A DNA stretch of 64,000 bases, taken from the NCBI RefSeq assembly GCF_006345805.1, contig NC_043012.1, positions 30,504,001 through 30,568,000 of the forward strand, written 5' to 3'. A program made the position numbers and the translations under genes. The notes below the pieces were generated by a model that saw only the letters and a list, made by a program, of their open reading frames with translations, was not told where the DNA came from and did not search any database. Source of the stretch: Octopus sinensis. Taxonomy: Eukaryota. Below are positions 38,792 through 62,889 of this stretch, piece by piece; the first letter of the stretch is position 1; every line of letters begins with the position of its first letter.

Positions 38792-38979
38792 TTAACAGTG
38801 TATGCAGAAAGGGCTTCCAGGGATCGGCTCGTCTCCCCAGTTGATGGATAATGTGTGGTCTCCAGGTTCGTTCACTTTGTATTGTAGAGCGTAAGCGTTT
38901 CTACCTGAGGCTTTGTACGCGAGTTCAACTGGAGGATTGCCTTTCTCTGAGACCATTCCAACATTCAACATGCCATGAC
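38792..38979 (-). CDS. FLN: Filamin-family gene, terminal coding exon (C-terminal part of the last Ig-like filamin repeat, the dimerisation repeat)
   Basis: Acceptor ccatttttcag|GT. Phase-1 translation GHGMLNVGMVSEKGNPPVELAYKASGRNAYALQYKVNEPGDHTLSINWGDEPIPGSPFCIHC* ends in the filamin-repeat signature WGDxxIPGSPF. AATAAA signals lie downstream. Family-level call only; the paralogue is not identified. Confidence 0.92.
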
Positions 38980-40188
38980 CTGAAAAATGGAATAGTTCAT
39001 GGTTAAATAAGTCGATAATCAAATAGACCTCATAGTTAGAGAGGAAAATAGTCAGATAATTAAATTGAAAATCAGTTATATTGATACTCACATTTTAAGA
39101 GAGTGAGATAACTAGATATTCAAATAACCAGATAATTAGCTAGTTAGATAGGAAGGTAGTTAGATAGTTAAATAGTAATTTCTATAGTTAGATACTCAGT
39201 TGGTCAGATAATTGGGAAGCGAGATAGAAATTAAGACAGTCAGATAGCTAGATAGTCAATTAGATTGTCAGATAGCTAAGTAGTCAGATAGTGAAATAAT
39301 TAGCTTGATTGTAAGATAACCAGTTCTATAGTTTGATGACAACATAGTCAAATTGCTCGATATTAAGATAAGTCCGATAGCAAAATAGTGAGTTTGTCAG
39401 AAGGAAGATATTCAGATAGATAGTCAGGTGGGAAGCTAGTCAAATAGATAGTCTTAGATATCAATTTGGTAAGGCACTCAGGTAAGACACCGAGCTGCTT
39501 GGGTAGCTAGATAATCAGATTATTAGTCATATATTTAGATATTAAGATAGCAAAACAGTCGGGCAATAAGATACTAAATCTGACGAATAGATAGATATCG
39601 TTTGTGTTTATATTTTTTGTGTATGTATATATGTGTTTATCTGTATGTATGTATATTTTTGTATGTAAGAATGTGTTTTTTGTGCATATATGTGAATAGT
39701 CAGATAGTAAACTACCTGTAGTCAAAGATAGTAAAAAGATAGTCAGTCAAGGGAGTTTGTCAGACACGGCTGGTTAGTTGCATAATCAAACTAAAAATGA
39801 TCAGCTGGCAAAGTAATGAAAAAATAATGAGGTAATTAGATCAGTGAGACAGGTAGCGAAGCAGTAGGCTGCGATTTGTGATATTTCGAGAGAGACATTG
39901 GCATAATGATATAGTTTTACAAATAAAGATCTTTCGGAGAAAGTCAATTAAGATTGAAGGTATTTCTTCGGCAATTTCCGCAAAAAGAATGTTTTTGCTT
40001 AAATTTTTTTCAGCCGAATCGTTTGTGCTTATATATTTTTGTGTATGTATGTATATTTTTGTATGTAGGAATGTGTTTTTGTGCATGTATGTGAATAGTG
40101 AGATAGTAAACTACCTGTAGTCAAAGAGTCAGGGAGTCAAGTAGTTAGTAGATATTAAAAACTAATCCGAAATCAAGCGATAACTCAC

Positions 40189-40380
40189 CGGCATCCTTCA
40201 CGTCTAAATTAATATTGACAACACGGTTATTGAACGCCTTCTTCAGTCCGGCGCCTTTAGCCAAGACCTTGGTTGCGTCACCACGGAGTTTCTTGGTGGT
40301 CACATGACCGATCTTCTTGTCAACGGTTTCAATAACCAGAGTACTTGTTTCAGTGAATGGACACGGTTTATGACCAGCAC
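40189..40380 (-). CDS. FLN: Filamin-family gene, penultimate exon (hinge 2 plus start of last repeat), 192 nt, phase 1-1
   Basis: ttgttaacag|GTGCTGG...GATGCCG|gtgagtt. Translation GAGHKPCPFTETSTLVIETVDKKIGHVTTKKLRGDATKVLAKGAGLKKAFNNRVVNINLDVKDAG has the hinge-2-like ETSxxxxETVxK and the repeat start DAxKVxAKGxGLKKAF. Splices in frame to 38792-38979. Confidence 0.9.
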
Positions 40381-40659
40381 CTGTTAACAACGGGGAGACG
40401 ATGGAAAAATAAAGAAAAAATGTTAGTCATATTATTATTATTATTTTTTTAGATTGGCAGATTCATTAGTGCGAGGGACAAAATACCATGCGGTATTTCT
40501 TCCGACTCTATATGTTTTCTGAGCTCAAATGCCACTGAGCTGAACTTTACCTTTCATTCTTTCGGGGTTGGTAGAATTAAATTTTAGCCCCATGATGGGG
40601 ATCGATATATTCAGCTAATACTTCCCCGCCCTGAAATTGCTGCCCTAAACCATTATTAT

Positions 40660-41560
40660 TGTTATTATTATTATTTCTTTTTTTATCACAGGTTTTGTTG
40701 GAGCTGCTGGAGTCTTGTATGCGTAGCGGACTTGCTAACTACAGCCTACGGTATCTATGCTATTTTTTTCGACTCTCTAATACTTTCCTGATTATTCTGG
40801 CCATGCCAAGGAAAGCTTTTGTAACAATTCTACTGGGCACTCTATTCCAATTTCCTTTATATTCCCCCTGATGCCTTCTGACACTGTTCCCAAGGACCCA
40901 ACAATAATAGGCACTGCCTTCACTTTCATTTTCCATAGCCGGGATATTTCGTACTATCTATCTATCTATCTATCTATCTATCTATCTATCTATCTATCTA
41001 TCTATCTATCTATCTATCTATCTATCTATCTATCTATCTATCTATCTGTCTATCTATCTATCTATTCTATTCTATTCTATCTATCTATCTATCTATCTAT
41101 CTATCTATCTATCTATCTATCTTTTCGCCTTTCTTCTTGACTATTCGTATCTCAAAGGGGCACGCAACATCAACTATATAGCATATGTGGTGCACCTTGC
41201 CCACTACCATTAGGTCCAGTCTGTTATGCTCTAACACCTGATCTGTTTTGGATTGGGAAATCCCAGAGGATTTTGCTAGTCTCCGACTCTGCCACTCTCT
41301 GCGGTTTGTGCTCATATCACGTTCTGCCTCTCTCTACCCCCCACTTTTCGCACAGTTTCCTATGTAGCACTTTCGCAACCTGATCGTGTCGCCACAACTT
41401 GTAGTGGTTTGGGGCAAGTCTAGGGCATTCGTTCGTGATATGGGCAATGATTTTGTCCACTCTATTGCAGATGTGGCACAGTGGAGACACTAGCTCATTC
41501 CTAAGGTTGACCCTCCAGTTCGTGGCCAAAGCTTGGTCTTGCACTGCCAGTATAGTGATC
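40660..41560 (-). mobile_element. R4/Dong-like RLE retrotransposon 3' fragment split by an internal (GATA)n expansion
   Basis: [46 protein letters not shown]-[microsatellite]-LWKMKVKAVPIIVGSLG. TAA-type repeats at both ends. Confidence 0.82.
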
Positions 41561-59919: not shown

Positions 59920-59957
59920 GCCTTTACATTTCGAGCATAGGCTCATCTACAGAAAGA
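59920..59957 (-). ncRNA. Minimal hammerhead-like motif (PLE-type), degenerate
   Basis: cuuu-CUGUAGA-u-GAGC-cuau-GCUC-GAAAU-GUA|aagg. Confidence 0.4.
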
Positions 59958-60559
59958 AGAGACGAAGAAAGGGAAAAGGTGAAGACAGAAAAGAACAAAC
60001 GGGCGTCAAATCGCCTCAGAAGGATTATTAATGCATTGCTGTAATTGAGTATACAAAATACGTGAGTCCTAAGAGACATTATATTTCATATATATATATA
60101 TGTGTGTGTGTGTGTGTGTGTGTGTGTGTGTGTGTGTATGTGTGTGTGTGTGTGATGTGTGTGTGTGTGTGTGTGTGTGTGTATATATATATATATATAT
60201 ATACAGAGAGAGAGAGAGAGAGAGAGAGAGGAGCGGAGAGAGTGCGTGAGAGGAAAGTTTGTTTTCATTATGAACACTGAAAGAGAAACAATGGACTCTG
60301 GGACATTATATATGCATATATAAATGAGTAATGTCTGCTTTTCACCGTACATCTTCGAATCCGGCGGTAAATTGTGAATGGCCATCTCCACACAAACTAA
60401 AAACAATAGAAGCGAGTTTTCATGTCAAAATATTGAAACGAGGCTTTTCTATGGATTTAATAGGATAAGATGGCTACAAAGATTGGAGTTAGTTTCAGTT
60501 GAAATAAATGGCGTTCTATATAGATTAATAATTATCATCAGATAAGGAATACTAAAAGG

Positions 60560-61200
60560 AATGTACATATATATATTAATTATATATATATGTATATTAT
60601 ATATGCATTATATATATATATTATATGTATGTATTATATGTATCATATATATATTATGTATGCATGTACATTATATATATATATATCATATATATGTTAT
60701 ATATATATCATATATATATTATATATATTATATCATATATTATATATATCATATATATATTATATATATCATATATATATCATATATATATATTATATAT
60801 ATCATATATATATATCATATATATATATATATCATATATATATGTATATTATATATTATATATGTATGTTTGTATATTATATATATTATATATATATGTA
60901 TGTTATATATATATATTATTATATATGTATATATATATATGTATATTATATTTATATATATATTATATACATATATATATATATATTATATATATTACAT
61001 TAATTATACATATATTATACATATATATATATATATATATATATATATGTAAATTTGGACATAGTCACGTATGAAACGTATAAAAACCCTGTATAAACGT
61101 GCGTATGTATGTATGTGTGTATATATATATTTATATATATATATATGAATATATATATATATATATATGAATATATATGCGCGTATATTTGCATATATGG
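60560..61200. repeat. Degenerate (TA)n microsatellite field
   Basis: Direct reading. Comparable TA/CA/GA/TATC/TACA tracts occur every 0.5-1 kb and generate most ORFs in the track. Confidence 0.95.
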
Positions 61201-62877
61201 ATATATATCTTTGTGTATGTGTATATATGGCTAGATGTATGTATATATTTTTAATATGTATATATGTATTCGTTGATGGAGTAAAAAATATCAGCATGCA
61301 TGGTGGAAAGAAACACATGGAGATAAACTTGGAATATCATCTAATTCTTAGAGCTGCATTTTGAAAGATCTTTGAAGGGAAAATCACACACACACCTAAT
61401 CAACATACGAACAAAAAAACTATCAATTCCCTTGCTAGGATATTCATACTAACAAGATTGAATCTGGTAAACATTTATCGTCTAGCAACGATATCAGTAT
61501 CCGGAGATTTATGATATCGGCAAAAAATTAGTGTAAAGATATGTCTAGACAATTATATGGCATTGATAAATATCGGTTATATCGAATGTTGCTATTGGAA
61601 CTGTTGTCGATTAGTTTCCAGGTGAACCCTGAACAGGTAAGTCCAAAACTAAAGAGGTGCCAGTCAAAATCAACTTGTTTTCTTTTTGTAAGATGATCGT
61701 ATTATTCAGAGACTTTTATGCCTTGAAGGCTGCATAGAGTGTTATGAAGTGCTGTGGAGATTTTCTCGCTGCATTGACTGGAAACTCTATGTAATGGGTG
61801 GGAAAAATGCGATGCAGGTTATCAGTCGACGAGACACTCGAGACACTCAACACGAAGAACTTCGCCGCTAGAATGAAACCCCAAAACATTGAAGGGAAGG
61901 TCCGTTCTAATGGACGTTTTCAGGGCCCGTCTGTCTGTCTATATCTATGTATGAATGTTCATATATTTGCATACACATATATACGTGCGAGTATGTAAGT
62001 ATATATATATATATATATATATATATATATATATATATATATATATATATTATATATGTTTACATATATATATAAATATATATGTATATATGTGTGCATG
62101 TATGTATATAAGTATATACATACATACCTACGTGTACACACATACGCACACACACACACACGTTTGTGTGTGGTGTGTGTATAGTCATACTAGTTTGAAT
62201 CTGTTTCTTCTGAGATACGTTTCTGCATTTATATAAAGATTCCATATAGCACGTTAGGTCGTTCTCAGCTATTGCAAGTAAAAACCCAGCTGGGGCATCG
62301 CATTCTGTTGAAACTTGCCCCATTCATTACTACCATATACTTTCTATGAAGGATAAAAGGATTTCATTGATAGTTTATGTCAAGATTCTGTATTAATTAT
62401 CGCTATCTTCATCCATCATCATCAACATCATCATAACATGCCAGAAATCAACATTTATTGTTAATAATATTTCTGAAAGAAAACTGCTATTCCGTTACAC
62501 AACCTAAACTATTTCGGGTTAGAAATTATATTGAAATATATTAAGGAAGATAATAATAATAATAATAATAATAATAATAATATAATAATAATAATAATAA
62601 TAATAATAATAATAATAATAATAATAATAACCATAGTTAAAATTTAAAAAATGTTTTAAAAAATATCAAGAAATACTGGAGTTATGACTATTCTAAACGG
62701 GCCATTTCCTTTGAACAATGCAATCGAATGCAAAAAAGAAGGAGCGAAAAAGCAATACGGAGATTTGCAATCCGAAAGAGAAGTAGAAGGAACGATCCAT
62801 AAAAAATTGGTAAACGAAGAATAAATGAATGAAAATTCTGGAAGCAATGCATGTATATATAGATATATTTGACTTAC

Positions 62878-62889
62878 CAGGCCGAGACT
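62878..62889 (-). CDS. Candidate 12-nt micro-exon (array unit 1), phase 1: (E)SRP
   Basis: tatatctcttgcag|AGTCTCGGCCTG|gtaagt. Flanks are homologous to the other array units. Confidence 0.65.

Follow-up and report, generated by a model that had tools for sequence, protein, structure and literature searches.

A stretch of 64,000 nucleotides (nt) from Octopus sinensis (contig NC_043012.1, positions 30,504,001 to 30,568,000; referred to here as the window, position 1 being its first letter) holds the last two coding exons of a filamin gene on the minus strand and, in the long intron upstream of them, an array of five micro-exons, m1 to m5 (Table 1). These micro-exons are likely to be alternative cassette exons of the filamin gene, inclusion of which would extend hinge 2 at its start. 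Filamin hinge 2 lies between immunoglobulin-like (Ig) repeats 23 and 24, both filamin hinges are calpain-sensitive, and dimerisation takes place through repeat 24 (PMC7216277).

When the two filamin exons are joined in phase 1 they yield an open frame of 126 amino acids (aa), GAGHKPCPFTETSTLVIETVDKK...GSPFCIHC, which ends in TAA. Residues 34-122 of this frame match the Pfam family Filamin (PF00630) with E 5.8e-15, and there are 940 filamin-type matches in a representative library. Alignment with eight filamin C-termini shows hinge 2 as running from GAGHKPCPF, the peptide with which the penultimate exon (hereafter the hinge-2 exon) begins, to KKLRG, and has the stop after the last repeat. The first Gly of the hinge-2 exon is the invariant Gly of the SPFKAxITG motif that closes Ig repeat 23, and its codon is split by the intron after the first base (phase 1). 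The exon is flanked by an acceptor reading ...ttgttaacag and a donor reading gtgagt. A preliminary description of the window had already placed the start of this exon at hinge 2 with a phase-1 acceptor, and the alignment and the acceptor sequence bear this out. It had also described the hinge as rich in Pro and Arg; the native hinge-2 exon is not, and such richness is confined to the micro-exon peptides. When 14 filamins from across the Metazoa were compared with the whole window by tblastn only these two exons matched, plus one marginal hit (E 0.92), and no exon for repeat 23 was found in the 23.6 kb upstream of the hinge-2 exon, in agreement with what had been stated before.

The micro-exons were sought with a pattern of pyrimidine tract, YAG, short exon and GTRAG. 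Five such sites were observed in 40381-64000, where 200 dinucleotide shuffles gave 0.11 on average and never more than one, and a stricter first scan of the whole window left the plus strand without any candidate of 12 or 18 nt. All five are very short exons (12-18 nt) with functional-looking splice sites; each has 15-17 pyrimidines in the 20 nt before the YAG, a length divisible by three (3n), a terminal G and a GTRAGT donor. They share the strand of the filamin exons and precede them, no further coding exon intervening, and are spaced 1.6-3.5 kb apart in the upstream half of the intron. The most upstream copy seen is m1, and further copies may lie beyond 64000. The exons start with AG (m1), CT (m3) or CA (m2, m4 and m5), giving a junction codon for Ala or Glu, and there is no stop codon in phase 1, in which the peptides from m1 to m5 read ESRP, APNCRP, APRP, AYRI and ASKA. 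The terminal G of each micro-exon rebuilds the Gly that opens GAGHKPCPF. The earlier claim that the micro-exons are upstream on the same strand and in frame in any subset is thus upheld, all being 3n with a terminal G and no phase-1 stop, and the junction peptides APRP-GAGHKPCPF and ASKA-GAGHKPCPF translate as had been stated. The shared phase 1-1 is not independent evidence, because a 3n exon suits any intron phase without a stop codon and it is the filamin exon alone that sets the phase.

A candidate exon of 50 nt whose acceptor and donor are both strong (50961-51010, minus strand) was set aside since it would break the filamin frame; it is possibly a poison exon or a chance site. A UGC near the acceptor (within ~15 nt), the motif of neural micro-exons that depend on SRRM3/4 (eMIC), is present as TTGCAG in three of the five micro-exons (m1, m2 and m5) and not in m3 or m4, and TTGCAG is also simply a good acceptor. 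No GCATG was found within 300 nt downstream of any micro-exon.

It is also apparent from alignment that the five units have more in common than their exons. Besides the exon and the donor, all of them share ~90 nt of intron on the upstream side (pairwise blastn E 1e-13 to 3e-4), this block comprising a branch-point-like TTCAT at -30, a polypyrimidine tract and the acceptor. Further blocks downstream of m1, m2 and m4 are repeated at 68-79% identity, and since the repetition extends beyond the exon flanks the array is read as a tandem duplication of kb-scale units, which are now interrupted by microsatellites. A profile of the five units detected a sixth copy, matched at 53559-53456, which no longer has the acceptor AG and whose donor has decayed to GTTAGC. 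The live copies are on average 67% identical to one another and 59% identical to the dead copy, compared with 51% for pieces taken at random from the same intron. In spite of ~33% divergence, none of the five live copies departs from the AG, the terminal TG or GTRAGTC; a rough estimate puts the probability that the eight signal positions were retained by chance in all five at the order of 1e-3 to 1e-4. The difference between m5 and m4 consists of apparent offsetting 2-nt indels, which leave the length at 3n. The unit copies are thus old, and the retained signals together with the 3n lengths are taken as evidence of purifying selection on splicing competence. The splice-dead sixth copy also serves as a rough neutral baseline for the array.

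The position of the intron appears from sequence comparison to be old. The same phase-1 split of the Gly codon is directly visible in Pinctada, in the leech Helobdella and in the acceptor of a locus from an unrelated mollusc-like species (L003); in L003 and in the Pinctada locus L126 the hinge exon has the same start as in the octopus. Many filamin fragments from genomic contigs end in ...TG followed by non-filamin residues, as intron read-through would give. The C-terminus encoded in the window belongs to a lophotrochozoan group of filamins marked by an ETV(D/E)KK hinge, of which Pinctada and Helobdella are the named members. In the Helobdella orthologue the intron is only ~175 nt and contains no micro-exon, nor room for one; a further relative (P0087) is intronless and was uninformative. 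Members of the orthogroup (P0046, P0119, P0273 and P0409) are multi-repeat proteins of 805-846 aa, and the 2-3 kb that precede the genes in oyster and leech (L126 1-3000 and L127 1-2000) showed no filamin repeat. The orthogroup may consist of a short filamin that lacks an actin-binding domain, or else of several short isoforms. A different paralogue in oysters has 20-plus filamin-A-like isoforms, and their small cassettes lie away from hinge 2; among them, in Ostrea, Crassostrea/Magallana and Saccostrea (P0017 and P0275-P0287), are VLTSSDWEIS, AVSPEEYEKYLEDQ and VAFFARFAHYQEEIQTTS, all at a distance from that hinge.

The observation that bears most directly on expression comes from Pinctada. 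A transcript-derived protein of P. fucata (P0311, A0A194AJE0) reads ...APEVT-ATGGS-GSGRKPSP at the junction, whereas an otherwise almost identical genome model of P. imbricata (P0409, KAK3089425.1) reads ...APEVT-GSGRKPSP. In the P. imbricata locus (L126, VSWD01000010.1) repeat 23 ends ...GTTACAG at 9795, followed by gtgagt, and the hinge exon starts GTTCAGGTCGT at 12468, leaving an intron of 2.7 kb. Within this intron is a 15-nt exon that encodes exactly ATGGS, a match whose chance is estimated at ~4e-6. As ATGGS occurs in a transcript-derived protein and the intron contains the matching exon, the bivalve intron holds a micro-exon of the same design that is present in mRNA. The deposited model KAK3089425.1 omits the 15-nt exon. 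The resemblance to the octopus array extends to the orthogroup (C-terminus 51% identical without gaps), the intron, the phase (1-1) and the terminal G; the Pinctada exon likewise starts with C, which makes the junction codon Ala, and adds five residues at the boundary between repeat 23 and hinge 2. Pinctada differs in that its 2.7-kb intron has a single copy of 15 nt whose donor, GTAGGA, is weak; in the window, consensus donors follow five live copies of 12-18 nt in an intron of at least 23.6 kb. No sequence similarity was detectable between the oyster and cephalopod micro-exons. Among Tara transcripts, one (P0097) reads ITG-TGKSSD and another (P0273) VTG-PNGEQG-SGKASD, a six-residue insert at the same junction.

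The history and use of the array may be pictured as follows. A kb-scale unit carrying one ancestral micro-exon was duplicated in tandem to give five micro-exons, all within the intron that interrupts the last Gly codon of Ig repeat 23 in phase 1. Any subset would splice in frame, each copy adding four or six residues, so that the linker before the dimerisation repeat could be lengthened by 0 to 22 residues in up to 32 combinations. The junction peptides predicted upon inclusion are ...T-ESRP..., APRPGAGHKPCPF and ASKAGAGHKPCPF. By analogy, the cephalopod copies would be spliced into mRNA, where they presumably combine freely rather than one at a time, and the length and composition of the linker may alter the flexibility or the cleavage of the hinge, an effect that we infer from the biology of the vertebrate hinges. 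The proposal in the preliminary description that an array in one very large intron tunes hinge 2 fits all the evidence, including the intron position and the Pinctada exon, once its Pro/Arg-rich hinge is given up. The site of insertion is close to hinge 2 as had been proposed, and its exact position is the boundary between repeat 23 and hinge 2.

A number of observations weigh against use of the array as filamin cassettes. The exon for repeat 23 lies outside the window and we infer the linkage of the array to the upstream filamin exons. The only close protein in the databases (P0001, UniParc UPI0006952734) is 93% identical and shows no inclusion of micro-exon residues. It is an orphan 127-aa fragment of two exons, with no recorded contig, that starts TGAGHK, which fits skipping of the micro-exons and a direct junction with repeat 23, many homologues ending this repeat in T, or else read-through of an intronic aca g; it says nothing either way. 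The Pinctada model that lacks ATGGS is a prediction, which can at most suggest skipping in Pinctada, and the two Tara sequences are from different samples and their difference could be a genomic indel between species. The micro-exon peptides are poorly conserved among the copies, and selection on peptide sequence is therefore weak or diversifying. A protein word search with the C-terminus returned only P0001 and P0002, but in such a search a filamin query returned proteins of at most 487 aa and missed its own 2264-aa source, so that nothing can be concluded from its finding no full-length cephalopod filamin. A scan of metagenomes with the back-translated hinge exon found no relative, and a DNA pattern for the conserved block gave 120 matches there, none of the fetched loci that were screened matching the hidden Markov model of the unit. 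A megablast search of a phage collection was likewise without a match.

Several other explanations of the array have to be considered. One copy might be chosen per transcript, giving five alternative inserts of 4-6 residues. Tandem exon duplication is the usual source of clusters of mutually exclusive exons, relatives carry zero or a single insert of 5-6 residues at the junction, and the peptides of the array have diverged while the splice signals were kept. Clusters of the Dscam exon 6 type are similarly tandem duplicates in one intron, each after a similar intronic element, but their exons exceed 100 nt and are policed by RNA pairing, whereas those of the window measure 12-18 nt and show no complementary docking site within 38792-64000. 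No non-repetitive complement of 11 nt or more, of the docking or selector kind, is common to the units in that stretch, a site beyond 64000 being possible, and the consensus fold is negligible (alifold -1.27 kcal/mol). Introns of 1.6-3.5 kb rule out steric exclusion and, with all exons 3n, policing through frame or nonsense-mediated decay cannot enforce exclusivity, so that strictly exclusive use is an unlikely arrangement. It is also rather improbable that the copies are silent pseudo-exons, left over from duplication and seldom if ever spliced, while repeat 23 always joins the hinge-2 exon directly. Such silence would agree with the lack of any micro-exon residue in P0001, with the one copy that has already decayed and with the low conservation of the peptides, but five of the six copies keep every splice-signal position at ~33% divergence and have 3n lengths, and the orthologous Pinctada micro-exon is in mRNA.

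The preliminary description had offered as its alternative a short transcript, or mini-filamin, with an upstream start, in which the micro-exons are followed by the dimerisation repeat and no other; a start in some other gene would have the same effect. An upstream start beyond 64000 would fall outside the window, and the members of the orthogroup are already short and have no filamin repeat in the upstream flanks that were searched. Short C-terminal filamins are known, Drosophila cheerio FLN90 being one, and the relatives of the window gene resemble it in being ~830 aa and, in the models seen, without an actin-binding domain; such short proteins still have about nine Ig repeats, where the proposed product would have only the one for dimerisation. 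None of the micro-exons has an ATG. In-frame ATGs occur only upstream of m1 and m3, within the polypyrimidine block, with no counterpart in m2, m4 or m5, and a search for a conserved ATG-bearing first exon in the right phase found none. Transcripts of relatives, moreover, pass from repeat 23 straight through the junction. A dimerisation-only product is accordingly very improbable, that part of the description finding no support in the window. The ATGs upstream of m1 and m3 (62878-62923 and 56816-56870, minus strand) would give hydrophobic leaders, MFHIFFAISLA... and MSYIFHIFFAISFSA..., and are probably a by-product of the pyrimidine tract. A micro-exon gene of the schistosome MEG type was rejected, as the array is followed by ordinary filamin exons and no conserved signal-peptide exon was found. 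It is hardly conceivable that the micro-exons are stepping stones of recursive splicing which only help the piecewise removal of a long intron and are then spliced out. The length of the intron and the spacing of the copies in its upstream half would suit such a role, but a G joined to CT.., CA.. or AG.. regenerates no 5' splice site, and the 2.7-kb Pinctada intron also has a micro-exon, which is retained in the mRNA.

As alternative cassettes of filamin, the micro-exons can be compared with splicing systems that are already known. In vertebrate FLNB and FLNC an exon at hinge 1 is alternatively skipped (PMC2199218; bioRxiv 10.1101/2024.10.05.616792). This resembles the present case in that splicing changes a calpain-sensitive flexible hinge and leaves the Ig repeats untouched, but a single exon of usual length is involved there, at the hinge that separates repeats 15 and 16, rather than a micro-exon array at hinge 2, between repeats 23 and 24 (PMC7216277 for the hinge positions). 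The nearest analogue in design, also in a flexible segment though in another protein, is found in the 5' mini-exons of fast skeletal troponin T. These are adjacent exons of ~12-18 nt with split codons in a shared phase, any combination of which stays in frame, so that many isoforms arise; they are not known to be recent tandem duplicates with shared intronic flanks. A literature search found no report of micro-exons or regulated splicing at filamin hinge 2, and a search on octopus micro-exons gave nothing on filamin.

The coordinates of the filamin features are collected in Table 1. Several other elements occur in the window. Within the large intron, 48061-48322 is a 263-nt near-perfect palindrome, 96.6% identical to its own reverse complement. 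A SINE-like (short interspersed nuclear element) sequence starting TCAATTGACTGCGGCCATGCTGGAGCACCGCC has three copies (29214-29281, minus; 18861-18928, minus; 21104-21172, plus), each of which mimics an exon with a good acceptor and donor. A fragment of a long interspersed nuclear element (LINE) reverse transcriptase lies at 26369-27184 (plus), with its best named matches in Octopus sinensis, Acanthosepion pharaonis and Argonauta hians, which marks the window as cephalopod DNA, and a gag-like open reading frame at 5068-5802 (plus) that ends in a CCHC zinc knuckle (CYKCKRRGHMKDVCP) is probably part of a retroelement. A run of N at ~10400-10520 marks an assembly gap and gives X residues in the open reading frame at 10226-10744. 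No Rfam family or tRNA was found in the window.

Table 1. Filamin exons, candidate micro-exons and associated features. Positions refer to the window unless a locus is named; a slash marks an exon boundary.
Feature	Position	Strand	Exon sequence and peptide	Splice context	Remarks
Last filamin exon	38792-38979	-			Second half of C-terminal (dimerisation) Ig repeat, stop TAA; tblastn matches from 14 filamins
Penultimate filamin exon (hinge-2 exon), 192 nt	40189-40380	-		Phase-1 acceptor, phase-1 donor	Hinge 2 and start of last Ig repeat
Visible part of intron between repeat-23 exon and hinge-2 exon, at least 23.6 kb	40381-64000	-			Microsatellites, remnants of duplicated kb-scale units
Micro-exon m5, 12 nt	51762-51773	-	CATCGAAAGCTG, (A)SKA	ttgcag/.../gtgagtca	
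Decayed sixth unit copy	53452-53564	-			Between m4 and m5; nhmmer profile of five units, E 9.5e-5
Micro-exon m4, 12 nt	55237-55248	-	CATATCGAATTG, (A)YRI	tttacag/.../gtgagtct	
Micro-exon m3, 12 nt	56816-56827	-	CTCCTCGACCTG, (A)PRP	tttttcag/.../gtgagtct	
Example of shared ~90-nt upstream block	56828-56922	-			Equivalent blocks just upstream of m1, m2, m4 and m5
Micro-exon m2, 18 nt	59394-59411	-	CACCTAACTGTCGACCTG, (A)PNCRP	cttgcag/.../gtgagtct	
Micro-exon m1, 12 nt	62878-62889	-	AGTCTCGGCCTG, (E)SRP	cttgcag/.../gtaagtca	
Pinctada micro-exon, 15 nt	L126 10592-10606		CTACCGGCGGCTCAG, ATGGS	aacag/.../gtagga	Phase 1-1

The hinges of filamin determine both the way in which the dimer cross-links actin and the sites at which calpain cuts it. 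Taken together, the expressed bivalve micro-exon and the five-fold cephalopod array suggest that splicing adjusts the hinge-2 linker in molluscs. Aligners and gene predictors easily overlook exons of 12 nt when the intron exceeds 23 kb, which may explain why P0001 is an orphan two-exon fragment. The array would be a clear example of new micro-exons born by tandem duplication. A more speculative possibility, put forward only tentatively, is that cephalopods have expanded one ancestral molluscan hinge-2 micro-exon and use the array combinatorially or in a tissue-specific manner, for example in nerve or muscle, as a dial with up to 32 settings that would adjust the length and composition of the linker on which the geometry and the cleavage of the filamin dimer depend. 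If true, this would be a rare case in which tandem duplication of a micro-exon has created a programmable protein spacer.

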